Assembly: GCF_963921235.1 (NCBI RefSeq)
Contig: NC_086101.1
Coordinates: 31,620,001-31,684,000 of the forward strand
Length of the DNA stretch: 64,000 bases
Reading direction: 5' to 3'
Source: Mobula hypostoma
Lineage: Eukaryota
The notes under the pieces were generated by a model that did not search any database, was not told the DNA's origin, and worked only from the letters and a program-made list of their open reading frames with translations. Within the stretch, counting starts at the first letter, position 1. The number at the start of each line of letters is the position of its first letter. The position numbers were made by a program, and so were the translations under genes. This document shows, in pieces, positions 591 through 64,000 of this stretch.

Positions 591-599
591 ATAGCATTT

Positions 600-1550: not shown

Positions 1551-1561
1551 TGAATAACATA

Positions 1562-26300: not shown

Positions 26301-29300
26301 TCACAGAGGAGGATCAGTGAGAGAGGGTTTCACTGAACTCCCGTCGAAGGGAAGATTTAAACTTCTTTAGGGTAGGCATCGCTGAAGAGACTTTTCAGTG
26401 TGTATGTTGCTTGGATTTCCAGCACCTCTGGATTTTTTCTCTTGTTTGTAATTTAGTTCTGAAGTTGCTACATCTACCCCTACACCTCCTCTCTCACCAC
26501 CATCTAGGGCCCCAAACTATCCTTCCAGGCGGGACAGGGCTTCAACTGTGAATCTGTCAGGATCATGTATTGTATCCAGTACTCCTGAAGTGGCCTCCTC
26601 TGCCTCAGTGACACCTGATACAGATTGGGGGAACGGCTTCAACAAGTATCTTCTCTCTGTCTGCTGAAAAAGGCTGGATCTCCCTGTGTCTTCCTATTCC
26701 GATTCAACTTCCCATTCCCATTCCAAAATGTCGTTCCTGGGCTCCTCTACTGCATTTTCTGTCTGGGTGGCCAGCCTCCAATCTGATGGCCTGATGGCAT
26801 GAACACTGATTTCTAAATTCTGCTCCTCCCCCACTCCTTTTCCCACTGCCATTGCTGGTAACCCTTTCACCCCCTCTCTACCTTCTCACCTCCGCCCCCC
26901 CCCTTCTCCTCGTTGTCCATCACCTCCTTCTGGTTCCCCTCCTCCTTGCTTTTCTTCCATGGTCTGCTGTCCTCTCCTATTAGACTCCTTCTCAGCCCTT
27001 TACCACTTCTGCTTCGCACCTCCCGGCTTCTTACGTCACCCCTCCTTTCCCACCCATCTTAGCCCTCACCTGCCTTCACCAGACAGTTTGTACTCCTCCC
27101 CCTCCTCCCCACCCTCTGGTTTCTGCCCCTTCCTTTCCAGTCCTGATGAAGGGTGCCATCCCAAAACATCAACTGTTTGTTCCCCCTCCATAGATGCTGC
27201 CTGACTTGCTGAGTTCCTCCAGCATTTTGTGAGTGTTGCTCAACTTTTCCACCATCTGCTGTGTCTCTTGTGTTGACGGTGGAGGTGTCAGTGGGGGAGG
27301 ATTTTGGGGGATAGGGCTCATAATTCTCTAAATGTCAAGGCAGTGAAGGATAATCATGGTGCACAAGATAACGTCCAAGATTGGGAGAAGATCGATTTCA
27401 AAATTAACAAAAACATTGAAATAGGTTTTGGACAGTAGGTAGGAGCCTGTTAAACAGTGGCTCATGAGAGTTCAGAGTTACCCTGTGCCTGTGAGGGTGA
27501 AAGTTAAGGACGTCAAGATGGGGAGGGGGTTGCGGCGGTGCTGGGTAATGAGGGCTTGATGAAGACAGGAAAGATATGACGTGTAAAGGGAAAATGGGTG
27601 GTGACGTTTCTGGAAAAAAAAGAATGACAAATAGGGGCCAGGAAATATCACTGGATGACAAAAAAGTTAAAAGAGAGTCCCAAAGCATTTGATAAGTATC
27701 TTAGGAGCAAGAGGGCGAGCAAGCAAAGAAGATGTTCCCTTAGGTAGCAAAGGGTCATCTGTGTGTGGAGCCTGGGGATGTGGGTGTGAAGTGTGTTCAT
27801 CAGTGACAAGGGCATTGCAGATGAAGTGCTTGAGGTGAGGGAGTATGATACTCTCGGGCATGTTAGGATGAAGCAAGAGGAGGTGTTCATGGTCTTGGAG
27901 CACATACAGGTGGACAAATCGCCAGGGCCTGTTGAGATGTATTGCAGGCTGCTCTGTGCAGGGGAGAAGATTGCTGGCTCCCGACAGAGATGCATACATC
28001 TTCACTGGCCACAGCTGAAGTGTCTGTTAACAGGAGGACAACAAATATAGTCCCTTTAATCAAGAAGGGTAACACATGGTGAACATTTTGCAAACCATTT
28101 CTTTTAGTATGTGTGTCACAGACAGTATTGTCAATTTGTTAATTTCAATTTACTGTTGCAGTTTACAAGTTGCGTTAAGAACTTAAAAAAACTAGTTCTT
28201 GCTTGAATTAATATTCGCTACATTCATACAAACTCCAGAATACCCTCCTCTTGCCCCTTAGACAGAAATCTGTCTTGGGAAGGCCAAACTTCAAGGAGGA
28301 ACTAATTAAGGCAGCGAAGATGCCCTTCACTTTGGATCCCTTCCCAATTAATAACCCATATTGTCCTTGTCTATCTAAGTACATGTACAATATCTGCCAT
28401 CCCTAACTGGCCATCTACGTGACTAAGCAGAGTTGACAATAAAACATTCTGGAAATTAGATCACATTCTCCTCTTGCACATATTTGTCTTTTTGATTTAA
28501 ATTAGTCTTTAAAATGCAGATTTGTCATTTGTTTGCTTGTTGCCTCTTTCCCTGATGACCGATGGCATTTTAATCACATCCTTATCTTCACCTCTTCAAT
28601 CTCTGATCGGTGAAACTATCAAACATGCTGTCAGTGGTTACTGTGTGGGCAGCGGGCAGTGGGCACCAGCAAGGTACCTGTGTTTCAGCTTCATAGGCAA
28701 CAGTTCACATTCCATGCCATGACAGAAGATTATCAGAATAATCGGACAAGTCTCTCAATCCCTTTGATCGATCTACAGGAGGATTTGGGGTGGTCTCTAC
28801 TCAAATAGTTGCAAGGATCTCAGCCCGGTGGCACCCCTCCCAGATTATCCTGTTGATTGCTGGCCCAACAACAGAAAGAGGCCAGTTCATTTGTCTTCAC
28901 TCCCATTCAGGCTGGGAAAGCTCCCTTCCAACACTTTGTGCAATTTCTTCTCTTTTTCTCAATCTGCCTTGCCATTGAGATTAACGTCTGTCATAACTTG
29001 AATTCCTGCCCCTCTATTTCACAAATCTTTCCATTCTGATCTGTATAACTAATCATCTCCCTCCGAGGACCAGCCTTCATTACAAAGTACTGCTAACATT
29101 ATATGTTAACATTTTATTCACGGTTTGCTCTCAGACTCTCACTGTCCTCTGCATTCACGTCCCCGTTCCTTTTCACTCACAGGTCTGCTTCAATCAGCAG
29201 GGTGATGGGCATTATTTTAGTTTCCTGTAATGCGATTGTCAGTGGGCTGACTCACTTGTTCTGCCGTCTCCCGCATCAATGGTGAACTCTCACATACATT

Positions 29301-30245: not shown

Positions 30246-33200
30246 CCTCCCTCCAAAAAAAATTTCGGTCTCTTAAGGAACAAAATTTTAACAATTAACA
30301 ATTTACACAAAAAAAATACAAAGGTATAAAATTTACAACATACACAATATACACAGTATTATCTTTCAGCACTTTACAAACTAATATACAGTAGGAGTGT
30401 TACAAGTGCTAAAATACCACTCCATAAAAAAATTTACATTGTACATTTAACATCTAGATAGAAAATCAGTGATCACATTATCTTTATCTTTAATATGAGT
30501 GATCAAAATATTATACTCCTGTAACATTAAACTCCAATTTAATAATCTTCTATTTTTGTTTTTCATCTTACTCAAAAACACTAACGGATTATGATCAGTC
30601 TAAACTGGGAGTGGTTTATGAGTAGTACTAACATACACTTCAAAATGTTGTGAAGCCAAAGCAAGAGATAATAATTCCTTTTCTATTGTTGAATAATTTC
30701 TTTGATGGGCATTAAATTTCTTTTAAAAAATAAGCTACCGGACAATCAACTTCATCACCATCATCTCTTTGAAGTAACACTGCTCCTGTAGCTTCATCAC
30801 TAGCATCTACAGCTAACGAAAATGGTTTTTCAAAGTCAGGAGATTTAAGTACAGGTTGACTACATATTATAGTTTTCAATTTATCAAATGCTTCCTGACA
30901 AGACTCTGTCCAAACAAACGTTTCACCTTTCTTCACGAGATTAGTTAATGGAAGAGCAATATTCGCAAAACTCTTACAAAATTTTCTGTAATATCCTACC
31001 ATACCCAAGAATCTTCTGAGAGTTTTCTTACCAGTTGGAGTGGGTACTTCTAAAATTGCCTGAAATTTTGCTTGAACAGGAGCTAATTTTCCTTGACCCA
31101 CAACATAACCAAGGTAAGTCACTGTGGCATGGCCAAATTCACTTTTCGCTAAGTTAATAGTTATCTTTTGAAAGTCTCTCAAGTAGTTTCTCCACCGCAG
31201 TAGTATGTGCTTTCCACATATTATTTCCTGTAACTATATCATCAATATAGGCATCTGTATCTTTTAATCCCTGAATCACACTATTAATCATCCTCTGAAA
31301 AGTACCTGGTGCATTCTTCATCCCAAATGGAAGAACATTATATACCTATAACCCAGATGGGGTTACAAATGCTGAAATCCCTCTACCTCTATCTGTCAAT
31401 GGAACACACCAATAACCTTTCAACAAATCAATCTTTGTAAGGAATTTGGCTTGTCCAACTTTATCCACATAATCATCTACCCTAGGGATTGGATATACAT
31501 CAGTTTTTGTCACAGCATTCACCTTCCTGTAATCTGTACAAAACCTAATACTATTGTCAGACTTAGGCACCATAACACACGGTGAACTCCAATTCGAATT
31601 AGAATGTCTAATAATATCATTCTCTAACATATACTTAATTTCTTGTTCAGCAAGTTCACATTTTTCCCTGTTCATTCGATACGGATGTTGTTTTATTGGT
31701 TTTGCATCTTCAACATCTACATCATGTGAAGCTACGGTGGTTCTTCTAGGAACGTCTGGAAATAAATCTATATTTAAAAATTAACTGTTTCATCTGCTCT
31801 CTCTGCTCTAGCTGTAAATGAGCTAATTTTTCATCCAATATTTTTTAGGATTTTTGAATTTGGTAATCTGGTTGAAATAATGTTGGGCTTAAAATGAGTT
31901 TCAGATGAATCATCCATTAAGTTTTTCTAAAGATCAGACTCATTATTTATCACAACAATCATAGTAGCAGTCTCTCTCTCATAATATGGTTTTATCATAT
32001 TTATATGACACAGTTGTGTTGGCTTTCTTCAATCTGGGCTTTTTAATCATGTAATCCACATCATTTCCCTTAGATTTAATCTCATAAAGACCATGAAATT
32101 TAGCTTGTAATGGGTTCATTTGCACCAGGAAAAGAACCAACACCTTATCTCCAGGCTGAAATAACCTCATTCTAGCTTCCTTATCATACCAAGTCTTCAT
32201 TTTCTCTTGAGCCAATTTTAAATTTTCCTTTGCCATGCTACAAGCTTTATATAATCTTTCTTTAAGTTTTAAAACATAATCCAGCAAATTAGTGTGTACT
32301 TCTTTATTAATCCACTGTTCCTTCAGCAAGGCCATAGGTCCTCGAACTCTATGCCCAAACACAAGTTCAAAAGGACTAAAACCTAATGATTCCTGCACTG
32401 CCTCTCATACTGCAAAATGTAGTAAATGTATGCCTTCATCCCAATTCTTCTCATTTTCCACACAATATGGCCTAATCATAGTTTCTAGGGTAGAATGGAA
32501 TCTCTCCAAGGCTCCTTGTGATTTTGGATGATAGGCTGATGAGATAATCTGTTTTGCTCCCTGTTTATAAACCATCTGCTGAAAGAACCCAGACATAAAA
32601 TTACTACCTTGATCTGATTGTTTTTCCTTAGACAACCCAAAATAAGTAAAGAATTTTATAAGAGCCTTTGTCACAGTTTTGGCTGTTATATTCCTAAGAG
32701 GTACTGCCTCTGGAAACCTAGACGCTGTGCACATAATAGTTAACAAATATTGATGTCCAGTTTTAGTTTTTGGCAAAGGACCTACACAGTCTACAATGAT
32801 TTTTGAGAACAGCTCACCAAATTCTGGAATTGGTTGCAGTGGGGCCCCTGGAGTAACTTGATTAGGTTTACCTACAATTTGACACATATGACACGTTCTG
32901 CAAAATTTTGCCACATCCTTTCTTAAACTAGGCCAATAAAAATGTTTAAAAACCTTGTTCATAGTTTTCTTTACCCCTAGATGGCCACCCAAAGGTATAC
33001 TATGAGCCATAGTTAAAATCTCATTTCGATAAACTTTAGGAACTACTACCTGGTGATTAACTTCCCATTCCTCACTAGCAAGAATTATAGGTGATCTCCA
33101 CTTTCTCATTAATACTCCCTTTTCAAAATTTTGGTACTTTTTCAATTTCACTATCTGGAAGAGCTTTCTCCTTTAATTTAACTATCTCAGAATCTCTACC

Positions 33201-35083
33201 CTGCTCTACTATCATCTCCTTCCAAGATAAAGACAAATCTTCATGGTCAGACTTACTACCAAAATCCTGATCAAATAATGTAGGTAAGAAAGTTTCTGAC
33301 ACATCCTCAGAATTCACATCCCGAGTTGAACAGTCATGGGTACCAACCTCATCCTGTACATCAGTCTTTTTAGCCATAGCTCTTGTTACAACACGGGAGA
33401 AATCTGCGTTAGAATCCCTCTGTGGTTCCTCAGAATTAGGATTTATTGTGAAATGCACTTCAGGAAAAACTTGTCCACCTGTTAAGTCATTCCCTAACAG
33501 AAGATCATTCACAGGTAAACTGGATGGTAGTCCTACTTTAACAACCCCTGTAACTAATACTGACCTTAAATTTACTCTATGTAAATGGGCTGGCATAAGG
33601 GCACTCCCAACTCCTCTTATATAATTTACCTCACCAATGTCAGACTCATCACTAAACTTTAGCACACTGTCTAATATTAGTGATTGAGAAGCTCCAGTAT
33701 CTCTAAGTATTCTTATTGGTACTGAATTGGATCCTTCTTTCAAGGATACAAATTCTTCTGTTATAAAAGATTCATATCCCCTCTTAACTTGGTCAGAATC
33801 TGACAAATCTTCATTAGTATTTATCAAACTCTGTGAATTTACAGGTTTTTCAATATGCTGCACACAAACATCTGGGACTGCTTCCTTCTCTTTCGTTTTC
33901 AATCGAAAACAGTTAGCTACTACATGTCCAGGTTTCTTACAATAATTACAAATAATACCAAAATGTCTTTCCTTCACATGTCTCCTTTCATCCTTACCTT
34001 TCTCACGAACTTCAGATTTAATTTCTGGTTTACCTTGACTCTTTGTGCTATTTTTCCTTTTAAAAGTTCTACCTGGAGAAAATTTATTCTTATGAATTAA
34101 AACTAATTTAGCAGTCTCCTGCAATGTAGCAGTGTCCCATTCATTTAAGTATGTTCTCACTTCAACAGGAATGCTTCTTTTAAATTCCTCCAGTAAAATC
34201 AACTCTTTTAATTTATTATACTCCCCATTCACATTTTTAGAGGAAACCCATCTCTCAAAACACAAGATTTCTCATAAGCAAATTCCACATGTTTTTTCCT
34301 TCGATTTCTTCAAATTTCTGAATCTTTCTCTATACGCTTCCAGAACCAACTCATATGCATTTAATATATGCTGTTTAACAATATCATAATCCAGTGCTTG
34401 CTCAGCATTTAAAGCTGTATAAACTTGTTGTGTCTTGCCATTAATTACACTTTGTAACATCACTGGCTATTGCTCTTTCAGCCACTTTAAACTCAGAGCA
34501 CAATTTCAAAATGCTGGAAATATTTGTCCACTTCAGCTTCATTAAATGGAGGAGCCAAAATAACCTCACGACTAGCAATAAACTGTTTCGTAGAACCAGA
34601 AGACTGATTTCCCATCCTTAATTTCTCCATCTCTGGCTCAAATTTCGTCTGGTATTCAGCTTTTCTTTCTTTAAATTCCCTTAATTTACTTTCCTCTCTT
34701 TCTTCAAATTCTCTTTTTTTATTTGCCTCTCTTACATCAAATTCCCTTTTTTTATTTGCCTCTCTTTCATCAAACTTTTCCAAACTTATATAACGCTCTG
34801 CGATTTTTCTTTGAATTAAGGCTTTTGTTGTACCTTTCATAATTCCTTTAATATCCAACCTCCTAGCAATCTCTGATACAACAGGTTTTCTCCTATTTGC
34901 TAAAAACTCCGGGTCAGGGGAGGTCATAAAGTCGTCAACATTCTTTGCAGCCGAATACCACTCACACACCAATCAAACTAAAAAAAGAAATCGGATATTT
35001 CCCTTTTCCAAAACAGAATGGAAATTAAACAAGCAGTTAAGCTCAAAAATTTGGAACAAGATCCCTCAAGCCCCCACAATTTC

Positions 35084-36672: not shown

Positions 36673-36800
36673 NNNNNNNNNNNNNNNNNNNNNNNNNNNN
36701 NNNNNNNNNNNNNNNNNNNNNNNNNNNNNNNNNNNNNNNNNNNNNNNNNNNNNNNNNNNNNNNNNNNNNNNNNNNNNNNNNNNNNNNNNNNNNNNNNNNN
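36673..36800. other. Assembly gap (128 N)
   Basis: Run of N; its flanks match both sides of the microsatellite region 9889-9976 in copy A. Confidence 0.99.
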
Positions 36801-38914: not shown

Positions 38915-41900
38915 ACAGGGGACGACTGCACAAGCGCGTGAAAGTCGGACCGTGAGGCAGCAGGAGAGTTTAAAAGTGAGGGGGGAGATGGAGTAGGGGG
39001 AGACAGAGTAGGAAGGCTTTGGCTCGAGAGGCTTCGGCCAGCAGAGGCTGAGGATGAGCTTCACTCCAAGTGAGGCAAGGCCGGGTAAGTTCCTTAAATT
39101 AATTTAATTACCTTAAGAGTAGGTAATGGAGGCAGCAGTTAGGGCAGTCGAGTGCTCCGTTTGCAGGATGTGGGAAGTCATGGCGAGCACAATCGTCCCT
39201 GATGACTACACCTGTGACAGGTGCATCCAGCTGCAGCTCCTGACAAACCGAGTTAGGGAACTGGAGCTGGAGCTGGATGAACTTCGGATCATTCGGGAGG
39301 CAGAGGCAGAAATAGAGAGGAGTTACAGGGAGATAGTCACCCCTAAGAGTCAGGAAACAGGTAGCTGAGTGACTGTCAGGAGAGGGAAGGGGAATAGACA
39401 GAATGAGCAGAGCACCCCTGTAGCTATTCCCACCAATAATAAGTACATTGTTTTGGATACTGTTGATGGGGAAGACCTACCAGGGACAAGTTGCAGTGGT
39501 TGCGTCTTTGGCACCGAGACGGGACCCTCAGCTCAGAAGGGAAGGAGGGAAAAGAGGAGAGCAGTGGTGATAGGGGATCCGATAGTTAGGGGGACAGATA
39601 AGAGGTTCTGTGGAGGAAATCGAGAATCCCGGATGGTCTGTTGCCTTCCTGGTGCTAAGGTCCACAATATCCTTGATCGAGTTCTCAGTATTCTCAGGAG
39701 GGAGGGTGAGCAGCTGGATGTTGTGGTCCATGTAGGGACCAATAACATGGGTAGGAGGAGTGAGGAGGTCCTGAAAGACAAGTATAGGGAGATAGGCACC
39801 AAGTTAAAGACCAGGACCTCCAGGATAGCAATCTCAGGATTGCTACCAGTGACACGTGCAGGCAGGTTTAGAAATAGTAAGATATCGCAGATCAACACGT
39901 GGCTGAAGACATGGTGCAGGAGGGAGAGCTTCAGATTTACAGATAATTGGGCAGTTCTCCAGGGAAGGTGGGACCTGTTCCGGCAGGATGGTTTACATCT
40001 GAACTGGAGGGGGACAAATATTCTTGCAGGTAGGTTTGTTAGAGAGGCTCCAGTGGATTTAAACTGGATACAATGGGGGAGGGGAACCAGAGAGTAGGAA
40101 CAGAAGTAGGGGAGAAGGAAGAAAACGAAAATAAAGTTGTTTGCACTGTTAGTGATAAACAGAGAGACAGGTGGAAAATTTCTTAAATGCATTTATTTTA
40201 ATGCCAGGATCATTATAAGAAAGGTGGAAGAGCTTAAAACATGGATTGATACCTGGAAGTATGACGTGGTAGCTATTAGTGAAACATGGTTGCAGGAGGG
40301 GTGTGATTGGCAACTAAATATTCCTGGATTTCGTTCCTTCAGGTACGATAGAATCGGAAGGGCAAGAGGGGGAGGTGTTGCATTGCTTGACAGAAAATAT
40401 TACAGCAGTGCTCTGGCAGGATAGATTAGAGGGCTCGTCTAGGGAGGCTATTAGGTGGAATTGAGGAATGGGAAAGGTGTAGTAACACTTATAGGGGTGT
40501 ATTATAGACAATCTAATGGGGAGCGAGAATTGGAGGAGCAAATTCGTAAGGAGCTAGAAGATATTTGTAGTAAGCACAAGGTTGTGATTGTGATTTCCAC
40601 ACAGACAGGAAAGCCCATGCTGTAAAGGGGCTGAATGGTTTGGAGTTTGTAAAATGTGTGCAGGATAGTTTTTTGCAGCAATACATAGAGGTACCAAGAG
40701 AAGGGGCAGTGTTGGATCTCCTGTTAGGGAATGAGATACGTCAGGTGACAGAGATATGTGCTGGGGAGCACTTCGGGTCCAGTGATCACAATGCCATTAG
40801 TTTCAATATAATTATGGAGAAGGATAGGTCTGGACCCAGGGTTGAGATTTTTGATTGGAGAATGGCTAACTTTGAGGAGATGCGAAAGGATTTAGAAGTA
40901 GTGGTTTGGGACAATTTGTTTTATGGGAAGGATGTAATAAAGAAATGGAGGTCATTTAACGGTGAAATTTTGAGGGTACAGAAACTTTATGTTCCTGTTA
41001 GGATGAAAGGAAAGGTTAAAAGTTTGAGAGAGCCATATTTTCAAGGGATCTTGGAAACTTGGTTCAGAAAAAGAGATATCTACAATAAATATAGGCAGAA
41101 TGGAGTAAATGAGGTGCTCGAGGAATATAAAGGATATAAAAAAAATCTTAAGAAATTAGAAAGGCTAAAAGATGATATGAGGTTGTTTTGGCAAGTAAGG
41201 TGAAAATAAATCCAAAGGGTTTCTACAGTTATATTAATAGCAAAAGGATAGTGAGGGATAAAATTGGTCCCTTAGAGAATCAGAGTGGATGGCTATGTGT
41301 GGAGCCAAAAGAGATGGGGGAGATTTTGAACAATTTCTTTTATTCGGTATTCACTAAGGGGAAGGATATTGAATTGTGTAGGGTAAGGGAAACAAGTAGG
41401 GTGGTTATGGAAACTATGATGATTAAAGAAGAGGAAGTACTGGCGCTTTTAAGGAATATGAAAGTGGATAAGTCTCCGGGTCCTGACAGGATACTCCCTA
41501 GGACCTTGAGGGAAGTTAGTGTGGAAATAGCAAGGGCTCTGACAGAAATATTTCAAATGTCATTAGAAACGGGGATGGTGCCAGAGGATTGATGTATTGC
41601 TCATGTTGTTCTATTGTTTAAAAAGGGTTCTAAGCGTAAACCTAGCAGTTATCGGCCTGTGAGTTTGACGTCAGTGGTGGGTAAATTGATAGAAAGTATT
41701 CTTAGAGATGGTATATATAATTATCTGAATAGACAGGGTCTGATTAGGAACAGTCAACATGGATTTGTGCGTGGAGGGTCACGTTTGACAAATCTTATTG
41801 AATTTTTTTTTTTGAAGAGGTTACTAGGAAAGTTGACGAGGGTAAAGCGGTGGATGTTGTCTATATGGACTTCAGTAAGGCCTTTGACAAGGTTCCACAC

Positions 41901-42987
41901 AGAAGGTTAGTTAGGAAGGTTCAATCGTTAGGTTAGAGACGCCAAAGAGTAGTGGTGGATAACTGTGTGTCAGATTAGAGGCCGGTGACTAGTGGTGTGC
42001 TTCAGGGATCCGTACTGGGTCCAATGTTGTTTGTCAAATACATTAATGATCTGGATGATGGGGAGGTAAATTGGATTAGTAAGTATGCAGATGATACTAA
42101 GATAGGTGGCGTTGTGGATAACGAAGTAAGTTTTCAAAGCTTGCAGAGAGATTTAGGCCAGTTAGAAGAGTGGGCTGAAAGAGGGTAGATGGAGTTTAAT
42201 GCTGATAAGTGTAAGGTGCTACATTTTGATAGGACTAATCAAAATAGGACATACATGGTAAATGGTAGGGCATTGAAGAATGCAGTAGAACAGAGGGACC
42301 TAGGAATAATGGTGCATAGTTCCCTGAAGGTGGAATCTCATGTGGATAGGGTGGTGAGGAAAGCTTTTGGTATTCTGGCCTTTCTAAATCAGAGCATTGA
42401 GTATAGGAGTTGGGATGTAATATTAAAATTGTACAAGGCATTGGTAAGGTCAAATTTGGAGTACTGTGTACAGGTCTAGTCACCAAATTATAGGAAAGAT
42501 GTCAACAAAATATGGAATACAGAGATTATATACTAGAACATTACCTGGATTTCATCACCTAATTTACAGAGAAAGATTGAACAAGTTTGGAGCATAGAAG
42601 GTTGACGGGGGACTTGATAGAGTTATTTAAAATTATGAGGGGGATAGACAGAGTTGACGTGGATAGGCTTTTTCCATTGAGAGTGGGGGAGATTCAAACA
42701 AGAGGACATGAGTTGAGAGCTAGGGGGAAATGTTTAGGTGTAACATGAGGGGGAACTTCTTTACTCAGAGAGTGGTAGCTGTGTGGAACGAGCTTCCAGC
42801 AGAAGTGGTAGAGGCAGGTTCAATATTGTCATTTAAAGTAAAATTGGATAGGTATATGGACAGGAAAGGAATGGAGCGTTATGGGCTGAGTGCAGGTCGG
42901 TGGGACTAGGTGAGAGTAAGCGTTCGGCACGGACTAGAAGGGCCGAGATGGCCTGTTTCTGTGCTGTAATTGTTATATGGTTATATA
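38915..42987 (+). mobile_element. Near full-length CR1 LINE (ORF1 zinc finger/coiled coil/SGNH esterase; ORF2 APE-RT), defective
   Basis: ORF1 from ATG 39126 (CSVCRMWE...CDRC, coiled coil, VVIGDPIVRG) with one in-frame stop; ORF2 CIYFNARII, YDVVAISETW, YRPVSLTS, YADD; (GTTATATG)-type tail; many frameshifts. Confidence 0.95.
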
Positions 42988-43538: not shown

Positions 43539-43655
43539 CTTTCGCATTCTTCAGCTTCATGATAACTGCTGCCAGCAGGATGAGCAGCTCGAACACAAAG
43601 CCCAAAGCTCCCACGATGATCTTTGTTCTCTCTGATTCTGGCGTGATCTGCACTT
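43539..43655 (-). CDS. MHC class II beta chain, connecting peptide/transmembrane exon
   Basis: 117-nt exon, acceptor gtttcccttgggcag|AA, donor AAA G|gtgtgc, phase 1/1. EVQITPESERTKIIVGALGFVFELLILLAAVIMKLKNAK matches the class II beta pattern (PESxRxK..GxxGFV..basic stop-transfer). Confidence 0.9.
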
Positions 43656-48403: not shown

Positions 48404-48688
48404 CCCAGTCCATGGTCATGGGCTCCGTCAGGCTGCTGTGCTCCACGTGACAGGTGTATTTATCCCCAGACACTGGGTCATACTGCAGGAGTTCCTCCAC
48501 CTGGTACGTCCAATCACCATCTGACAACAGGACCGTATTGATGGCTCCATTGGGAACTGGGGCTCCATTCTTCATCCATGTGACTTTAATCTTTGGAGGG
48601 TAAAACCCAGTGACATGACAGGTGAGCAGGGCCAACTGCCCTGACTGGGAGGGCAAGACTTTAGGTCGGATGGTGATCTCAGGTTCAA
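48404..48688 (-). CDS. MHC class II beta chain, beta2 (C1-set Ig) domain exon
   Basis: 285-nt exon, acceptor tttctcctccag|TT, donor TGG G|gtaagt, phase 1/1. VEPEITIRP...LLTCHVTGFYPPKIKVTWMKNG...LLSDGDWTYQ...YTCHVEHSSL...MDW has the class II beta2 motifs; in frame with the beta1 exon. Confidence 0.96.
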
Positions 48689-51297: not shown

Positions 51298-54200
51298 TGT
51301 ACCATATAGCCTACATTATAAGGAACTACTTTATATTTTAGTAACATGGATCTGTATGTGTGTGAGTAAAAGTTTGGACTCCACCAGTAAAGAACCATGA
51401 GACTTAGTTCCCATCTCCAGCATTGTTATTAATAATAGTTTTGCAAACAGGCCACATACACAACAAATTGGCGACAAGAATTATGAACCTTCATCTTATC
51501 GGAACGCTGTGTTTTAGTTGATAACGACACTCGGAGAAGAGAGAGAAGGGAGAAGAAAAGGAGCGACACGCATCTAGACAGTGTGCTCATTGCACTAGCA
51601 AAAAGGACACACAAGTCAAGTGAAATGTGCTGTGACTGCAAAGAGCTAGCAAAAAAGAAAACAAGGAAAAACCGGGCTAAATTAACGTAACAAAGATGGC
51701 GATGATTGGAACCATTACAGCATTTGATAGTGGCATTGAAAACTGGGTAATTTACATTGAAAGAGTGGAGTTATATTGTGATGTTAACAGTGTTAATGAT
51801 GAAAAGAAAACCAGCGTCTTACTCGGTCTTATGGGAGCAAAAACATACGGGCTGCTACAGGGCTTGTTAACCCCTGAAAAGGCAGCTGACAAAACATTGA
51901 AGCAAATAGTAGACACTCTCCAACAGCATTTAAACCCCAAACTACTGGTCATTGCTGAAAGATTTAAATTTCACAAACTGAAATCAGCAAAAATGAGAGC
52001 ATTTTTGAACATTGTGCTGAATTGTGCAAATTATCAGAACATTGTCAATTTGGAACTGGTCTATTGGATGCATTGAGGGACAGGTTAGTGTGTGGCATGC
52101 ACTGTGAAACCACACAGAAGCTGCTCCTGTGTGAAAAGGACCTTACATTACAGCAAGCGCTGAACATTGCAATATCATTGGAAACTGCAGCACAGGGTGC
52201 TTCAAAGATACAACAAAAATCTCTGGAGTATGCTACAAATAAAATGTCACTGAACAGAAATGAAGGAAAGAAATGTTACCATTGTGGGAACATGTCACAT
52301 GACCCTGAGGACTGTTGGTTAAAGACAAAGAATGCAGAAACTGTGGCAAACAGGGCCACATTTGCAGAGTATGCAAAGCTAGTAAACAGCAGAAAAAAGG
52401 ACAAAGTACAGAGAAACAAGAAACTCCATAAAGGAAAATACAACAATGTACACAAAATGAAAGAAAGCAGTTCTGATGAAAATGACTCAGACAAAAGTGA
52501 ATTGTCTTGTCTGCAACTCTACAGCGTGAAAGAAACGGATGATTGAAGAGTAATATGGATCACACCACAAGTGACAGAAGTGAGACTGAAAATGGAGTTG
52601 GACACAGTCTAAGCTTTAACAGTGATCTCTGTACATGACTACAAACGACTGTTTTCTCACATACCTCTGAAACGAACTAAACTACTGTTAAAGACTTGCA
52701 CAGGACAGAAAGTGTGTCCCAAAGGTAAAATTAAATTGACAGTGAGCTACAGAGACAAAACACAGCAGTTGAACCTCTATGTACTGAAAAATGGAGGACC
52801 ACCGCTGCTAGGACGTGAATGGCTCAGGAAAATCCAGTTGGATTGGTACACCATCAAGGCACTAGTTGTGTCAGCAAAGGAGAGCAGCAAGGCTACATCT
52901 GAGAGATTGTCACAAGTACTTGCTGACTCTGAGGAAGTGTTCATGAAACAAATAGGAACACTTCAGGGCATGAAGACAAAGACTGAGGTTGAGGAAAATG
53001 CATGTCCAAAATTTCACAAAGCCAGACCAGTGCCATATGCAATCTGTCCTACAGCAGAGGCAGAGCTGATAAATCTGGAGCAGACTGGGGTCCTGTCAAT
53101 GGTGGATTGCAGTGAATGAGCCACATCTATTGTTCCAGTGATGAAGAAAACCTAAAGCACAAAACCGGGAAAACCAAGCAAGGTGCACATATGTGGAGAC
53201 TTTAAAGTGACTGTTAACTCAGTTCTCTGCACAGTACAGTATCCCCTACCCCATATTGAGGACATTTTTGCTTCCCTGTCAGGAGAGGAACATTTCACAA
53301 AAATCGATTTGGCCCAGGCTTACTTCCAAATGGAAATCAATGAACCATCTAAGAAATACCTGACAATAAATACACACACAAAGGACTTTACCAGTACAAC
53401 AGGTTGGTGTTTGGGATGGCATCAGCTCCTGCAATCTGGCAAAGGGCAATGGACCAGGTCCTGCAGGGAGTTCCAGGGACTCAGTGTTACCTTGATGACG
53501 AACATTGTCACTGGCAAAGATGACGAACATCTTTCTAACCTTGAACAAGTGCTCACCAGGTTACGAGAATATGGGCTCAGAGCTAATCGACAGAAATGTG
53601 AGTTCTTCAAAAAGGAAATCTCATACTGTGGGCATGTGATCGACAAGGATGGCTTACACATGTCTCAAGACAAGATAGAAGCGGTGTTTAAGGCACCACC
53701 ACCTGAAAATGTGTCTCAGCTGAGAGTCTATCTTGGACTAGTGAACTACTAGCACAGGTTCTTGCCTAACCTATCCACAGTCCTACACCCACTAAATGCA
53801 CTATTACAGACAGGGACAGAATGGAAGTGGACTGAGAGCTGTGAGAAAGCATCTCAAGAAACTAAAAGACTTCATAACTTCGGAAGGGGTGCTCGCACAC
53901 TTTGACCCCTCCTCACCAATCTGACTGGCTTGTGATGCCTCAACCCATGGGTTAGGAGCGGTGTTATCACACAAGTTTCCAGATAGCTCAGAAAGATCAA
54001 TAGCCTTCACCTCAAGAACGCTAACTTCAGCTGAACGCAACTACGCACAGATTGACAGGGAGGTCCAAAGCCTCGCATGGGGAGTCAAGAAATTCAGTCA
54101 CTACCTGTGTGGTCAAAAATTTACCCTGTTGACTGACCATCAGCCTCTCTTTAACCCAAGGAAAGGCGTTCCAGTGATGACAGCACAAAGGCTGCAGCGA

Positions 54201-55965
54201 TGGTCTCTTTTCTTAGGAGGTCACATGTATGACATTGAACACAAGGGGACCAAGCTACATGGCAACACAGATGGTGTGTCACGTTTACCACTGCCGACTT
54301 CAGAGATAACTACACAAGTGGATTCAGCAGAGGTCTTTCACACAACAATAGTTGAACAGTTACCAGTGGCAAACAGCCTCATTGAAAGAGAAACACACAA
54401 TGACTATGCTGTCAAAAGTGTATGACATCACGGTAAAGGGATGGCCAGCTCGTGGTAACACAGTTTCCAGCCTTCTCAGCGAGGAAGGAGCAGTTGTCAG
54501 TGTGTTGGGGAACACTAATGTGTGGTTCACGAGTTGCGATTCCTCCCAAGCTACGCACCAGAGTGATGGAGGAACTGCACGAGGGCACCTCGGTACCGTG
54601 AAGATGAAAAGTCTTGCCCGTGCCTATGTGTGGTGGCCAGGAATCGATAAACAGATTGAGGACTTGACCAAGAACTGCTCTGGATGTCAAAAGATCCAGA
54701 ACACACCACCACAAGCCCCTCTCCATCCATGGAAGTGGCCCTCATCACCATGGCAATGAGTGCACATCGACTTTGCTGAACCATTCATGGACTATATTTT
54801 AATTGCCGTCGATGCACATTCCAAATGGCCAGAGGTCATCAAAATGAAAACAACCACATCAGAAAAGACCATTACAGTTCTGAGGACCATGTTCGCCAGG
54901 AATGGCATACCAGAACAAATCTGCACAGACAATGGATGACAATTTGTCTCTGAAGAATTCCAAACTTTTGTGAAGAACAATGGAATCAGGCACTTGACAT
55001 CTGCCCCTTACCATCCATCCACAAATGGCTTGGCAGAAAGATTTGTGCAGACATTCAAGAAAGCCATCAAGGCAATGGACAGCGAAAATCGACCACTGCA
55101 ACACAAGATAGACAACTTTCTCCTTGCCTATCATAATGCAGTACATGCAAGCACTAATCAGACTCCAGTGATGAGGTTTCTGAACAGGAACCTGAGGTCC
55201 CGCATGGATCTTCTTAAACCAGATGTACAGCGTGATGTGGAGAACAGACCGTTCAAACACTTGAATGCCAAGTCAACACGGAGCTTCAGTGTGGACAGTC
55301 AGTTCTTGCATGTGATTACCTGGCTGAAAAATGGCAACCAGGTACAATTTCCCCCATAGACGGGCCACTAGTGAAGGTGGGAGAGAACGTATGGAGACGT
55401 CATGTGGACCAAATCCTGGATGCTCAGGTGAAAAGCACAACACATTGCCCGGACTCCCCGGACATAGAGGCAAACACTCCTGATGTGACCACATCAGCCG
55501 CATCTACAGATAAGCCTGTTATCAGTGCTGATGACCTACCTGATGTACCTGTGGAGACTCATTCCCCAAAGCAAACGTTTCAGGTCAAACATTACCCAGA
55601 GAGGCAGAGGAGACCTCCCCAGAGACTTGAGTTCTAAATGGGTCTTAGACCAAAAGTAAAAAGGCTTGTGATAATTTGATATTACATATTAAGTTACTTT
55701 GTTATATAGACGTCTGTATGTTAAGGGTAAACATTTGTTTAGCATAGTGCCCCAGTAAAAAAAAAGTTGATACACTATTAAGAGAAAAGGGGAGGAGAGC
55801 ACCGTATAGTCTACTTTATATTAAGGAGACTACTTTATGTTTTAGTAACACGTCATTGCATGCGCTATTAGACACGTGTGGGTCAGTATGTGTGCGAGTA
55901 AAAGTTTGGACTCTACCAGTAAAGAACCATGAAACTTAGTTCCCATTTCCAGCATTGTTGTTAAT
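51298..55965 (+). mobile_element. Ty3/Gypsy LTR retrotransposon (gag-PR-RT-RH-INT), decayed, antisense in MHC intron 2
   Basis: LTRs 51298-51465 and about 55798-55965; PBS-like tggcgac at about 51469; PPT about 55779-55797; gag ORF 51696-52546 with CCHC remnant, MELDT protease, RT (KIDLAQAYFQ), RH, integrase (SAPYHPSTNGLAERFV). Confidence 0.93.
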
Positions 55966-56353: not shown

Positions 56354-56623
56354 CACTCCGGGGCAGCACCCATTTTTCATCGATGGGGATGGTGATCTCA
56401 CACGCACGGCTCCCCTCCTGGTACCTTGCTTCCGCTTTCCCGTCCTTGTTCCAGTTGTTCACATTCCTCTGCATCGGTGTCTTTGCTGCCACATACTTCT
56501 TCATGTCATAGTTGTAGTAGGCAATCAGCTCACTGTTGTAGAAGAGCTCTTCGAAGTAGGTCCATTCTCTGGCGTCACTGCTGTTAAACCGACAACCGTT
56601 CACGTAGTAACCAGAGTTGGCCC
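56354..56623 (-). CDS. MHC class II beta chain, beta1 (peptide-binding) domain exon
   Basis: 270-nt exon, acceptor ctttctttcttccag|GG, donor AGT G|gtaagt, phase 1/1. Translates (G)ANSGYYVNGCRFNSS...NVNNWNKD...SRACEITIPIDEKWVLPRS: two Cys 64 residues apart (C15-C79 spacing of class II beta), N-x-S sequon after the first Cys, WN motif. Confidence 0.93.
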
Positions 56624-58859
56624 CTGGAAGAAAGAAAGTTATTCCCACGCCAAACACCACTGCCTTGGCTCAGAGGAGCCACTCTCCCGAGGGATGCCAG
56701 GTCATCTCTCCCCACCCCACACAGGACTGTGCAACCTGCACCTCCTAAGCGGTCTTGGACATGGTCTCATCCCACAACCCGAGGGCCTGAGCCCTCTGGG
56801 GGCAGTTGTCATGAACAGTAAATCTACCCCAGCCCACTGGTGCACATGTCCACTGTTCCAGCTGTTTTCACAGCAGGGGCAAGGGTGGTGGGAACTAGTT
56901 CAGTGAGTGCCTGTCAAGATCCTGGGCTCTTTTTTTTTGCAGTTCAGTTTGTCTTTTACACATTGTTTGTCCATCTTGTTGTGTTTTTCAATTGATTCTA
57001 TTGTTTCATTGTTTACTTCAAATGCCTGCAAGAGAATGAATCTCAATATAGTACATGTACTTTAATAATAAAGTTACTTGAACATCTGAGGGGTACTGAA
57101 CTGTATTAGTGTGCAAGGTGAGGGAGTTTGATGGCAATTGGGATGTGTAGTGACGCTGGGCCCAGATTTAATTATGGAGGAAATGCAAGGCAAGATAAGC
57201 AGAGGAGGTGACTGGGTAAGAGGATATGGAATGCTCAGAGACAACAATGAGCATGGGACAGAGCAAATGAAGGTCTGAAAGTGTGTTTTCTAACAGGGAA
57301 CTTTGCTCAGTTTGGTATGATAGGATTTTATTTAGTATTAAGTGGTTTGAGATCTATATGTGGGATTGATGTGTTAAATACTACTGACGTTGTGGGATAA
57401 GGGAGATGCTACTCACAATCAAGTTCTGGCAGGTGCATCAGATCTGTGCTGGAATCTACAAGGATCACTGGTTGAATCTTCTACAGCCATTAAACTCTGT
57501 TTGCACTCTGCTGCTGGGTGCCTGCAGTTCAATGAAGCTTGTTTTATAGAGCCATGGTCATTTGTTGTGGAAAGAAATCATTGCCCAAATGCTGGCTTTT
57601 ACCTCAGTGCTGGAATGAGGCAGATTAGGTCCCTGGTTTAAACAGCAGGGCTCAATACAAGGCATGCCCCTTACAGGGACAATAGGAACTGTCAGCATTG
57701 GTTGAACCCTGTAATATTTACAGTGGAGGTGCAAAATTTTGAACATAATGGCCAATTCACATCTCACTGTCAGAGACACAGCAGGAAAACAACTGTATCT
57801 AAGTTTCATGTTTCCTTCCTTGCATACACGTCAGTTAATACCATAACTAGCTCAGGATGGCCGCATCTGTGCAAAGTAGTCCAACAGCAAGGAGGAAATG
57901 GAGTGCAACAGGATACATACTTCAGTGGGACAGGAGAATTTGGTTCAGGTAAACCAGAAACAGGTTGGTAATCTAAACCACTGAAGTTATCCTTCAGTAG
58001 GGAGGTTGTTCAATCCAGGTACATTCCCACAGGGGATAGTAGAGCAACCAATGCAAAAATTATAAATGCTGAAACCCACAGGTCAGATAGCAACTGTGGA
58101 GAGAAACCATTTTAAGGCATTACAATGTCCCTTGCCAGCCCATCACCATGAAATGTTAAAGGTCATCACCACAAAATGCAACCAAATTGTGGGTGTCAGG
58201 TCAGTCACCTTAGTACCAAGACATCCCACAGAGACCCTCAGGACAGGGCCCTGGGACCAGCCAGTTACAGCTGCTTCACCAGTGACCTTTCTTCCATTGT
58301 AAGGTCAGGAATATAGGGGATGTTCAATAACAATGTCACAAGGTTTGATTCTGAATACAATTCCTCACCAAATGAAGCAGGGCTCACCTATAGGCAGGAA
58401 AATCTGGACAATATTCAACGGACTGATGAAGCAGGTAACACTCCTGGCACAACTGCCAGGCATGGTCTCCAATGCAAGTTTAACCTCCTCTTGATAGTTA
58501 GTGATGTTACTGTCACCTCCAGCCCCTGCCCCACCACCATAACATTCTGAGAAACAGCATTGACCCCCTACCCACTCAATTACTATGGCTACAAGTGCAG
58601 CTCTGAGACTGGGTATCCAGTGGTGAGTGACTTCTCCTGATGCCCCAACATGCACACCCTAAGGAATTCCCACCTTAACAGCCCTACGCCCCTCACCAGT
58701 TCAAGGCACTGACTCATCACCACACGCAAGGCAATTAGGGATGCACATTACTCACAACAGGCACTTCCAAATGCCAAATAACATCTTGCCAAGTACATTT
58801 ATGCAAAACTTGGTGTCCCTAAAAAAAGATGAATTAGAAACAATGTTATATCAGTGTAA

Positions 58860-61800
58860 TGCTCAGGTCTATTGGCTCATTTATCTAGGAGAAACCCCGT
58901 CCGCCCGCTAAACCGTGTCTCACAGTTGTGTCATTGCTGTGTAATGCCACCTGGTACAAACTCACATCAAATATCAGACAGCACACAATGTACAATTTAC
59001 AGATTACACTTTATAAATCTTACTGGAACTATGTAATTAACAGAGATACAATATAAAAGGGGAAGTAAAAGGCGCCAGACTTAGAGTTCAACCACTTCGT
59101 GCACAACAGTCGGAGCTCAATTAACGGGGTCCTCCTTCCACCCTGCGATCCCCTCGAACCCCTCGACTCGCCACTCGGGACCAACCACGGTGGTCGACCA
59201 GAGCGCGTCCAGCACGTCCTTCCTCTTTGGGTCTCCTCCTGAAAGCCCGCCAAACCACACGGTTCCCAGCCGTATGAGACAGAATACCACCCACAAAATG
59301 AATAACATGGACACCCATTGGTTCGTTCGCCCCCTTATCAATAATATAACCCAAACAAGCAGGGAGAGAGATAACTCCCTACATCGCAGTTATTATTACA
59401 GAAAAGCCATTTTTCTTATAATATAACTAAGAAGCCATTTTGTTAGCCTTCGCAGTAATAAAAGAAACCCCTTACACTCCCCTCCCACCAAATAAAGTCA
59501 TGTCCTCATGACATTAAAGGAGTTCACCAATGCTCCTTGTAAAACACAAAACCTAACCCAGGGCATAAAGCAGTGACATAATTTCCCAGGGCGGTAGAGA
59601 TCACACCCTGTTCTCCCGGCACTACATAGGTCAACCGCTCCGGGGGGGGGGAGCGGTTCCTACTTCTGACACCTCCGTACCTCCTCTGGCAACCCTTCCA
59701 GCTCAGACATGACTGAGACACCCCTGGTCTACCTGTTGAACCCTTGCCCACTTCCTCCCTGGGACCCGTCTCGGGTTTTGGTTCCACCCTCTCTCCCTCC
59801 AAGGCCGGCTGTATCCCAGGCCGCCCCCCAACACTCTCCCTCCTCTCACCTAACTCAGTGGGATGGGGGGGAGAAAAAGAGGGTGAGGAGCATCTTCTTC
59901 CAGTACCAGAGAATTAACAAATGGAAGCAGGTACCACACATCCGAATCATCATCTTCCAAATCAGTATCCCTTTCTGGGGCGAGGCCCAGCCTCATCTCT
60001 TTCACGGTGGGCTCTACCCTCGCCCCGCGCCTCCGCAGTCCTCGTACTAGGCGTAAACTCCAATTCGGGCTCTTGGTGTACTTGCACCTCTTGACCCAGG
60101 GGCAATAGGTGGTTCCGATGGAGTACCTTGACAGACCCCTTCCCGTCCTCGGGTCTCACCCAATAAACAGGGAGGTTTGGCATCTGGCTCTCTACCACAT
60201 AGGGGGTGGCTGCCCAGTGATCTGCCAACTTGTGCTTACCAGGTAGTCCTAAATTCCATTTGAGAACCCGGTCTCCCGGCACAAGTTGGGCAAACTTCAC
60301 TTTCTGATCATACCTCTTCTTATTCCTCCGATTCTGCTTGGTGGCCACCGCCTCAGCCAACTCGTACGCCCTTTTCAACTCTCTCCTCATATCGGACACA
60401 TACTTCAGATAGGGCTTTGAAGGTAATTCACCCACTTCAGTCCCAAAACACAGATCAATGGGCAACCTCGCTTCCCACCCAAACATCAGATAATAAGGCA
60501 AGTATCCCGTAGCATTATTGCGGGTACAATTGTGACAGTGAACCAAATGCCCGATGTGCTGACTCCACTTACTCTTCTGTCCGATCTCCAGAGTCCGGAG
60601 CATGTCCAACAGGGTCTGGTTAAACCTATCGGGCTGAGGATCACCCTGCAGGTGGTAGGGTGTGGTCCTGGATTTCTCAACCCCAAGCATATCTAGTGGA
60701 TAAGCCTGCTCTCGAAATACCGTCCCTGATCACTATGGATCCGTCTGGGGGGGGCCATAATGAACAAAACGCCTCTCACATAACACCTTCACCACTGTAG
60801 TCGCTTTCTGGTCCTTAGTGGGAAACGCCTGAGCATACCTAGTGTAGTGATCCGTGATGACTAAAACATTCGCGGTGTTGCTGGTGTCTGGCTCAACAGA
60901 CAGGAAATCCATACACACCGGGTCCATGGGTCCCGCACTCTGCAAGTGGGACAGAGGGGCCGCCTGCACAGGCAGGGTCTTCCTCCTGATGCAGCGACTG
61001 TATGTCTTACAGTATTCTTCGACCTCCCCCCTCATCTGGGGCCAGTAAAACCAGTCCTTGAGTAATCCACAGGTCTTTTCCACCCCCAAAATGCCCGGAA
61101 TCTTGTAATGAGCTCAGCACAGTCTTCCAATACTTCTCAGCAGGCAATGCCAGGGGTGGTCCAGGGACGACGTGACCCAGTATACGATATGGTTCTTCAA
61201 CTTCAACAGAGGCGACTCCTTCAGTAGTAAGGGCACTGAGGCGTGTTGCCTTCTCCACCTGAGCCATATCCCACTTTTTAGCCACATACCAGATAGTGCC
61301 AATGCCCGGGTCATCTCGCTGAGCCACCTCCACTTCCTGGGGGCTCAACTCCAGTAACTGCTTGTCCTTCAGAGCAGTCAAATTACAGTAAACAGTGGGT
61401 AGCGCGTCATTGTCAACCCCCAATTGATACACTGCCTGATCCGGCCCCATCGGGTCTCCGGCTTTAGTGTCGCTTGCAAATTGACACATGGCCTTCACTC
61501 CCGGGGCAGGGACGCTCTCCCACTCTTCATCTGTGCCCGATCCCTCATGTGCCCGATGAGATAAAGCATCTGCATCGATGTTCCGACTCCCCGGCTGGTA
61601 CTTCAGGCTGAACTCATAGGCAGACAAGGCCGCCAACCACCGATGCCCAGTAGCGTCCAGTTTCGCTGAGGTCAGAATATAAGTGAGGGGATTGTCGTCC
61701 GTCCTCACCTCAAACTTGGCCCCGTACAGATAGTCACTCAACTTGTCCACCACCGCCCATTTCAGTGCCAGAAGTTCCAACTTGTGAGTGGGATAGTTTC

Positions 61801-63040
61801 TCTCAGAAGGCGACAAACTCCGGCTGACAAACACCACTGGCCTCAATCCGTTGCCCTGCTCCTGGTACAGGACAGCCCCCAGCCCCTCCCGGCTGATATC
61901 AGTGTGTAGCTCATAACGGCTTCTGGGGGTCAGCAAAAGCCAACACCGGAACCTGTGTCAGCGCCCTTTTCAGCGAATGGAACGCCTCCTCACATTGAGT
62001 ATCCCACCTCGGTCCAAAGGGGTCCGACAGGTTCAGATATCCTCCTGCCTCCTGCCTCCTGCCCTCGTTCTCCCTTCCTTTTCTTCCCCAAGGGGGGAAT
62101 AGCCACACAAAAGCTGGTTCAATGGGGGACTCACTTTAGCATATCCTTTCACAAATTGCTGATAATACCCATAGAACCCCAAAAACGAGAACAGGGCGCT
62201 CACAGTCTGGGGTCTCGGCCAGGTGGTCACTGCGTCCATCTTAGCCAGATCGGTAGCCACTCCATCTGATGAGATTATGTGTCCGACATAGCCGACAGAC
62301 GTCTTACAAAACTGGCATTTGTCCAGGGAAAGTTTTAACCCTTCCTCCTTCAGCCGGCTTAACACCTTCGATAGCTGCTCCTCATGTTCTTCCAAAGTAG
62401 ATCCAAACACTATCAAGTCTTCCAGATACAGCAACACCTCAAGCAAGTTCATATCCTCCACTGTCCTCTCCCTGACCCTCTGGAAGGTGGCTGCGACCCC
62501 CCGATACACCTTGGGACATTTGTTCGAGCTGAAAGAATCCCAGGGGGCAGATAAAGGCCGTCTTCTCTTTATGGGCCCCACTCATCGGAATCTGGTAATA
62601 CCCGCTCTGCAAATCCAATACACTAAACCACTGGGCACCACTCAAACAGGCCAATGCATCTTCAACCCTCAGGACCATATACTGGTCAGGGACAGTGCAC
62701 CAGTTCAGGGTCCTGCAGTCCACACACATACGTACTTTCCCATTTTTCTTCCTTGCCACTACTATAGGGGATGCATAGGGGCTCCGTGATAATCCCCACA
62801 TCCTTCAACTGGCGCAAGTGCTGCCGCACATCTTCCATATCAGCCGGGGCCAGCTGTTGCGACCTTTCTCTAAACGGGGTGTCATTTGTCACCTGGATAG
62901 TGTGCTGAGTGCTCTTGGAACATCCCACATCAAACTCGCCCTGAGAAAAGACATCCCCTAACTCCAGCATCTTCTCCACCAGCCTTCTCTTTACACTCCG
63001 GCAGCACAGGGGAGTCCTCAAAGTTAAAGGCCTCCTCGGT
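58860..63040 (-). mobile_element. 5'-truncated Ty3/Gypsy element (RT-RH-INT plus 3' LTR), same strand as the MHC gene
   Basis: RT (ASPIVVARKKNG, LDLQSGYYQI, YLEDLIVF), RNase H (ORF 61007-61936), integrase (ORFs 60733-61089, 59962-60690); PPT ggtgggaggggag (59477-59489) then LTR from TGTAAGGGG at 59476; distal LTR end uncertain (58855 or 58940). Confidence 0.9.
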
Positions 63041-63289
63041 CAGCCAATACTCCTCTGGACTCTCTAATGAGAGCACATCCTTAGGGAGTATTGTCAAAAG
63101 TTTGGGGCCCCAAGTGCAGCCTGACTAGTTTTTTATAAAGGCTCAGCATCATCTCCTTGTTTTTAATATTCCATTCTCCTTGAAATAAATGCCAACATTG
63201 TATTTGACTTCTTTACCACAGACTCAACCTGTAAATTAACCTTCTGGGAGTCTTTCACAAGGACTCCCAAGTCCCTCTGATGGAGTAGA

Positions 63290-63874
63290 GGGATAGACAA
63301 ATTGGGGAATAGACTAAGAACAATGATTAACTAATGATCAATTATCTTGCTTACCTTAGTTTACTGTTTTGGACAGTCAGAATGAAGCTTTACCCAGCAG
63401 CCGGTGACGTACTAGTCATTATTGTCTAAAGATAGGCAAAGGCTCAAATAAGGAGCTATCTGATCATGCAGAAGCATCAAGGTGTAGCTAAATATGGGAA
63501 GAACAGTGTAGGGGTTAGAATGTTCTAGAGAAAAGGGGAAGCTGTCCAAATGAGGAACTGATGGGCTAGCTTTGGCTTAAAATAATTATAACTGACTAAC
63601 CAATGATCATTTTACATCTAATTGCATCTTAGCATGTGATTAAAATGATTCTAATATTGTCTAAACTTGTAATCCTAAGATTTCCTGCTACCTGATCAAT
63701 GTTATAAATTGTGGAGAATTGTGTAATTCGGGGGCAGTGTCCGGACTAGCTCTTTGGGAGATCAGTCTGTAACTTCCACCATAGCATACTGTGAATAAAG
63801 AGTAAAAGTTTGAGAAAGAATTGTGTTAGTCTATTTGTGGTATTGTTCTTGCATCAGGTCAATTTACCGTGACA
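63290..63874 (+). mobile_element. Probable solo LTR (ERV-like)
   Basis: TATA-like gttataaatt at about 63701, AATAAA at about 63795, ends ...gtgaca; left boundary not resolved. Confidence 0.35.
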
Positions 63875-64000
63875 CCTCAGCACCTCTGACATTTGAACCT
63901 TCTCCCTATTTAGATAATAGCCTGCACTATAGTTCTTCCTACAAAAATGTATCATACATTTCCCAAAACAATTCCATCTGACACTTTTTACCCATTCTTC

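Follow-up and report, generated by a model that had tools for sequence, protein, structure and literature searches.

Does a class II beta gene of a devil ray that has changed the residues clamping the peptide backbone still present peptides, has it taken on another role, or is it on its way to being lost? The question arises from twelve bases in a 64-kb window (the whole stretch of Mobula hypostoma DNA analyzed here). Positions 56391-56402, reverse-complemented, read TGT GAG ATC ACC, which translates as C79-E80-I81-T82 at the end of the beta1 helix, in a gene that otherwise carries many of the expected marks of an MHC class II beta chain.

Gene structure and family placement

The gene lies on the minus strand, and the twelve bases fall within its exon 2, which encodes the beta1 domain (56354-56623, 270 nt, phase 1/1; in-frame codons 56621-56355, 89 residues). 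This exon opens behind an acceptor AG at 56625-56624, itself preceded by a pyrimidine-rich tract, and closes on a donor GTAAGT that starts at 56353. Within it C79 occupies 56402-56400 and is followed by E80, I81 (56396-56394), and T82 (56393-56391); the ATC of I81 and the ACC of T82 are each one second-position change away from AAC. On the same strand follow exon 3 (48404-48688, 285 nt), encoding a beta2 domain of the Ig C1-set type with the class II-type Trp in GDWTYQ, and exon 4 (43539-43655, 117 nt), encoding the connecting peptide, the transmembrane helix, and the start of the tail and ending in a GT donor. Joined, the three exons give 223 open codons with no stop or frameshift, phase-1 boundaries throughout, and canonical splice signals at six of six positions. 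The original prediction had described C79-E80-I81-T82 in a setting of normal C15-C79 spacing, WN motif, glycan sequon, and open frame, and every element of that description is borne out by the sequence: the beta1 cysteines stand 64 residues apart, matching C15-C79; an NSS sequon lies three residues after C15, with the N-glycan site near beta19 intact; and a W-N pair occupies the W61/N62 position, with a one-residue offset common to all rays. By tblastn with five class II beta proteins, these three exons are the only matches in the 64 kb (the beta1 exon matches a Hypanus sabinus class II beta at E = 2e-34), and no alpha-chain exon was found in the window by the same program.

Domain models recognize the beta2 domain readily (Pfam C1-set, E = 4.5e-23, 81.8 bits), and it matches the class II beta2 domains of PDB structures at ~1e-25. 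For beta1, the Pfam MHC_II_beta model (PF00969) returns 17 bits, below its cut-off of 20.9, and matches to class I alpha2 domains in the PDB are similarly weak. We considered and dropped the idea that these scores indicate a very divergent beta1 domain, as classical elasmobranch chains score as low or lower. The same model gives 21.4 bits for a stingray chain, 12.5 for a white shark chain, and 95 for the coelacanth, and gives no score to a published classical bamboo-shark chain, a skate chain, and a Mobula chain. As a separate observation, PF00969 misses or barely detects the beta1 domains of classical shark and ray chains (0–21 bits for P0015, P0018, P0021, P0024, and P0025), and annotation that relies on such domains will therefore underestimate the number of class II beta genes in cartilaginous fish. 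The model does not carry over to elasmobranchs, and published classical shark chains fall below its cut-off too.

Searches for the protein itself recovered few relatives. Among 1.84 billion cluster representatives, a HMMER search with beta1 found six proteins only, of which four are fragments or transcripts of shark and ray class II beta at 43–55% identity. Neither this search nor a word-indexed search of ~5.8 billion proteins, covering lengths of 72–229 aa only, contained a protein carrying the window's beta1, the best match being 55% identical. When a full-length transcript from the HMMER set served as query, 25 elasmobranch class II beta chains were recovered, including published chains of Chiloscyllium plagiosum; a single Mobula hypostoma protein was among them, and it comes from another locus. 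Two very long proteins, P0005 (2474 aa) and P0008 (1411 aa), match beta1 in six to seven separate stretches at 26–28% identity and may represent tandem genes of class II beta type that were merged into single gene models.

The alignment and the beta1 and beta2 trees that the original prediction had proposed assign the gene to the ordinary elasmobranch class II beta family. Whichever of the two domains the tree is built on, it falls inside the class II beta chains of Myliobatiformes, as sister to P0024 of Hypanus sabinus, the Atlantic stingray (support 98/87 for beta1, weak for beta2); next in relatedness comes P0021, the annotated chain of Mobula hypostoma. Judged by these alignments, the gene is by descent a member of that family. 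The devil ray's class II region would then hold a second MHC class II beta gene, of which this is exon 2, and its counterpart in the Atlantic stingray is a gene of classical type. The beta2 motif PP(K/E)I(K/E)VTW adds an observation of its own: its K-I-K and E-I-E alternatives are common to the paralogue pairs of several sharks, and the devil-ray pair splits likewise, with KIK in the window and EIE in P0021, a hint that rays, too, may have the two old beta2 lineages known from sharks.

Residues 81 and 82 and other conserved positions

According to the original prediction, His81 is near-invariant and had been lost here. In cartilaginous fish this premise fails. The consensus after C79 in the alignment of elasmobranch chains is C-(E/Q)-N-N-I, and among 25 aligned sequences and the published set beta81 is mostly Asn and sometimes Thr, Gln, or His; in Table 1 of Almeida 2020 (PMC8010645), beta81 varies among N, T, Q, and H, and beta82 is N in 18/18 chondrichthyan rows. 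Because both the table and the aligned chains show N, T, Q, or H at this position, a missing His81 is the norm of the lineage, and residue rules derived from mammals, such as the one for His81, do not carry over to elasmobranchs. At beta81, where bony vertebrates have His and cartilaginous fish have Asn, Thr, Gln, or His, the window gene has Ile in place of a polar residue able to form hydrogen bonds.

The loss of Asn82, by contrast, was correctly called. Asn82 is kept in 25/25 other elasmobranch sequences and in both bony-fish sequences aligned, and the window gene replaces this universal residue of the compared sequences with Thr. Nor is the pair common among the lineage's classical chains: Ile81 together with Thr82 occurs in 0/25 aligned elasmobranch sequences and 0/18 rows of Almeida's Table 1. 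Beta-N82 has been described as the best conserved and most important residue for hydrogen bonding to the peptide backbone, and loss of H81/N82 was used to class the teleost DB/DE genes as nonclassical (Dijkstra 2013, PMC4219347). Of the proposal that loss of H81/N82 is a hallmark of nonclassical class II, the N82 half stands on this teleost precedent, while the H81 half falls away with the norm of the lineage. By its residues, the gene would probably not count as a classical presenter: Asn82 and a polar beta81 are absent, and Trp61 is retained.

A leave-one-out count of invariant columns, taken over 25 other elasmobranch sequences plus coelacanth and gar, shows three such columns broken in the window gene: D41N, N82T, and a transmembrane Gly to Glu. 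Most other sequences show 0–2 violations, and two divergent shark loci show 4–5, all or nearly all of them in beta2. The count alone is not extreme; in this alignment, it is the identity of the sites affected that is. All of the altered codons are on the minus strand. Asp41, the D of the FDS/FDF motif, is Asp in 25/25 elasmobranchs, coelacanth, and gar and is encoded here as Asn (56511-56513). Trp53, present in 24/25 other elasmobranch sequences, has become Pro through two base changes (TGG to CCG, 56475-56477), and beta60, usually Arg (column conservation 0.84; R in most rows of Table 1 of Almeida 2020, PMC8010645), is Asn (56454-56456). In exon 4, GAG (43588-43590) places Glu at the second Gly of the transmembrane GxxxG, a position that is Gly in 27/27 other aligned sequences; the motif reads G-F-V-F-E instead of the usual G-F-V-x-G. 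In mammals and nine nonmammalian species, the only completely conserved transmembrane residues of beta chains are reported to be the GxxxG glycines and one C-terminal glycine (J Immunol 2026, PMC13399432).

The beta1 changes are compatible with a folded domain in a structural prediction. An AlphaFold2 model of the 89-residue beta1, built from a 28-sequence alignment, has four strands and a long helix at a pLDDT of 90.1. The best 50 matches listed from the PDB belong without exception to class II beta chains of classical type (such as I-Ek, HLA-DR, HLA-DQ, and chicken BL), the top ones at TM 0.82–0.85 and most at TM 0.80–0.85 with an rmsd of about 2.4 Å. As modeled, the window's beta1 can still adopt the classical fold, and a model of half a groove is silent on the ligand.

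Divergence by exon and the ends of the gene

Divergence is distributed very unevenly along the gene. Identity to Hypanus P0024 is 63.6% in beta1, 96.8% in beta2, and 92.3% in the connecting peptide and transmembrane exon; the corresponding values for Mobula P0021 are 54.5%, 93.7%, and 94.9%. The beta1 terminal branch, at 0.66, is the longest among elasmobranchs (sister 0.15, median 0.23), and the beta2 terminal branch is 0.019. Where the Hypanus and Mobula chains agree, the window gene differs at 18/61 beta1 sites and at 2/125 sites of beta2 and the transmembrane exon (P = 3e-8, Fisher's exact test), and in a relative-rate comparison its beta1 has accumulated 18 changes vs. 5 in the sister, or ~3.6 times as many (P about 0.007–0.011). 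Differences from the sister are over-represented among the positions that Almeida's Table 1 gives as peptide-binding (13/23 vs. 19/65; P = 0.025). Conserved and variable beta1 columns are altered in about the same proportion as in the sister gene. This acceleration is confined to beta1, and a pseudogene that has decayed uniformly over a long time is therefore excluded by the 18/61 against 2/125 changes. In this comparison, most of the beta1 divergence appears to be divergence that arose while the remaining gene stayed constrained. Exon-specific recombination or gene conversion could also yield divergence in beta1 only.

The original prediction held that the gene may be intact, which the sequence does not establish: neither a leader nor a tail exon turned up in the window, and the transmembrane Gly is now Glu. 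In 56624-64000, ~7 kb upstream of exon 2, neither tblastn with four ray leaders nor a scan for an ATG, hydrophobic core, and phase-1 donor detected a leader exon. At the other end, the tail motif AILDSSxHGPRLM is nearly invariant across the aligned elasmobranch chains, and in 1-43538 on the gene's strand we found no credible match to it by tblastn with BLOSUM62 or PAM30 or by motif regular expressions. The best candidate, 17010-16984, was rejected, having neither the upstream half of the motif nor a stop. The two sister genes are 35 and 42 kb long overall. Set against these spans, the absence of the tail from 1-43538 means that the tail exon of the window gene, if present, would lie more than 43 kb beyond exon 4. 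The leader or the tail exon may lie outside the window.

Several mobile elements surround and interrupt the gene. Intron 2 holds a Ty3/gypsy-type retroelement (51680-55640, plus strand, antisense to the gene) with long gag, zinc-knuckle, protease, RT, RNase H, and integrase frames spread over several reading frames. A second LTR-type retroelement (59965-63040, minus strand), with RT, RNase H, and integrase in shifted frames, lies in the gene's orientation 3.3 kb upstream of exon 2, and its insertion could have displaced or separated the leader exon. Downstream of exon 4 lie two further retroelements with long open frames, at 30715-34970 (minus strand) and 39120-42480 (plus strand): one is of gag-pol type and the other is LINE-like, with endonuclease and RT. 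Through these young insertions, the 3′ part of the gene may have been lengthened or broken up. A run of 128 N bases (36673-36800) falls within a repeated element. Farther downstream, a direct, co-linear duplication of ~8 kb joins 1-8510 to 20187-27973 at 89–93% identity, and its first copy is interrupted at 1883-3322 by an additional reverse-transcriptase element. At 14924-14989 there are two CCAAT/ATTGG boxes with a spacing of 30 bases. Mammalian-type X1-X2-Y patterns matched no full promoter module in the window, an uninformative result.

Decay, a new role, or ordinary variation

The reading we tentatively rank as most likely, without great confidence in it, is that a duplicated class II beta locus left classical peptide presentation and is now a young, unprocessed pseudogene or null copy in decay. 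We prefer it because universal invariants are altered in several modules of the protein, the terminal exons are missing, and there is no corresponding database protein. The groove-forming beta1 domain has evolved several times faster than its sister's, with the Ig domain and the membrane anchor nearly static; the Asn82 clamp on the peptide backbone has given way to Thr and Asp41 to Asn; and the second Gly of GxxxG, the site at which the alpha and beta helices pack, has become Glu. Under this scenario, the three exons would still be open because the decay is recent. That function has been lost is what we infer from D41N, N82T, and the transmembrane Gly to Glu, all of which break invariant columns, from a near-invariant tail motif not found in 1-43538 and the lack of a leader-like exon in 56624-64000, and from the lack of any protein with this beta1 in the databases searched. 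The last argument is indirect and presupposes that the window comes from the annotated assembly, and the terminal exons may, as noted, lie beyond it. Harder to reconcile with decay are the 223 open codons and six canonical splice signals, a beta2 and transmembrane region that is nearly unchanged (2/125), as it would be in a working gene with a changing groove, and the concentration of differences from the sister at peptide-binding positions.

Those same features could instead describe a working nonclassical class II beta chain, whose groove was remodeled under changed selection and whose Ig domain was kept for pairing, a reading that we consider less likely and on balance rather unlikely. Such a chain would have no Asn82 clamp, hydrophobic or small residues at 81–82, and alterations at beta53, 56, 60, and 71; it might hold peptides only loosely, have a different ligand, or help classical molecules, and its transmembrane Glu would alter partnering. 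Acceleration limited to beta1 with beta2 and the transmembrane exon constrained, changes enriched at groove positions, and an intact open frame with its splice sites all fit this account, as does a beta1 that is predicted to fold confidently as a class II beta1 domain. The two base changes behind Trp53 to Pro point to long-standing freedom at that site, and by analogy loss of beta-N82/H81 also defines teleost DB/DE (Dijkstra 2013, PMC4219347). However, the GxxxG glycine lost here is invariant in 27 other aligned chains and reported as fully conserved (PMC13399432), a tail exon found elasmobranch-wide is missing from 43 kb downstream, and the proportional alteration of conserved and variable columns, as in the sister, fits relaxation as well as adaptation. 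Moreover, the odd residues are not kept in other species: the window's beta1 has no database match, and the sole identified counterpart, Hypanus P0024, keeps all of the classical residues, and there is therefore no conserved nonclassical lineage. The stronger form of the proposal, that the locus is an expressed, intact nonclassical class II beta of devil rays and the first in any cartilaginous fish, is somewhat more doubtful still. If true, the groove would have dispensed with Asn82 as its clamp on the peptide, and a charge within the membrane helix would change the way the chain pairs or its partner.

An ordinary polymorphic class II beta allele or locus of classical type, with unusual residues and still presenting peptides, is improbable. 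Its beta1 identity to paralogues of 54–64% would be unexceptional, lying within the range between loci of one shark species (about 53–56%), it retains the disulphide pair and glycan site as well as Trp61, and groove positions are the most changed. But Asn82 is present in every classical sequence compared, the altered transmembrane GxxxG and Asp41 are unprecedented in the set, and the beta1 terminal branch (0.66 vs. a median of 0.23) is the longest among elasmobranchs. It is very improbable that the odd codons are artifacts of sequencing or assembly in a gene that is otherwise normal, as six or more separate substitutions outside homopolymers, one of them a two-base codon change, would be needed at conserved sites in two exons 13 kb apart.

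Membership in another MHC category, as a W-category beta or a DM/DO-like chain, has a negligible probability: what might speak for it, the weak Pfam MHC_II_beta match (17 bits) and the similarly weak class I alpha2 match in the PDB, is undercut by Pfam scores just as weak in published classical shark and ray chains, and both candidates were rejected on their own characters. The beta2 Trp of GDWTYQ is present in the window gene, and W-category and class I chains are by definition without it. DM-type chains are set apart by an insertion in the middle of beta2 that is unique to DM (Dijkstra 2013, PMC4219347) and by a tyrosine sorting motif in the tail; the window's beta2 aligns to classical chains without such an insertion, its tree position is inside the Myliobatiformes class II beta chains, and its fold matches are classical. 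The original prediction's suggestion of a DM-like chaperone role finds no support in a gene that is sister to a classical-type stingray gene and has no DM-type beta2 insertion.

Previous surveys of shark and ray genomes reported class II genes of the classical kind alone, and neither DM nor DO (Almeida 2020, PMC8010645; Verissimo 2023), and further divergent class II genes were judged unlikely in cartilaginous fish (Almeida 2020, PMC8010645). The classical elasmobranch DAB/DBB genes share with the window gene the domain architecture, C15-C79, the beta19 glycan, Trp61, the lack of His81, and the Ig-domain motifs, but the members tabulated by Almeida 2020 (PMC8010645) all have Asn82 and four transmembrane glycines, unlike the window gene. 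The W-category WB chains (Okamura 2021, PMC8713811) likewise have the two-domain layout of a beta chain and occur in rays, but they map outside the MHC and have no interdomain Trp in beta2 (Ig-domain position 61), which the window gene has. Teleost DB/DE beta chains (Dijkstra 2013, PMC4219347) are old lineages kept across species with alpha partners of their own, whereas the window gene is a single locus with a classical-type nearest relative and no common descent with them. That relative, Hypanus P0024 (annotated as [quoted passage not shown]), is the closest comparison: it has an exon 2 of the same length class and the same glycan site, and both genes have a ray-specific Ala at the position of the C-terminal transmembrane glycine. 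P0024 keeps Asp41, Trp53, Arg60, Asn82, and the GxxxG glycine together with a leader and the conserved tail, whereas the window gene alters all five residues.

The locus may thus be a snapshot of the death of a class II gene or, less likely, a first hint of nonclassical class II in sharks and rays, and it would be of note only if it proved to be transcribed and other species proved to have kept both Thr82 and the transmembrane Glu. Vertebrate MHCs commonly contain pseudogenes of class II beta as well as divergent loci. In humans, HLA-DRB6, DRB9, and DPB2 are class II beta pseudogenes or low-activity loci that were duplicated within the class II region; they arose by duplications unrelated to that of the devil ray, whose three identified exons are still free of stops and frameshifts, and, like the window locus, they keep some open exons and lack key residues or, as may also hold for the window locus, terminal exons.
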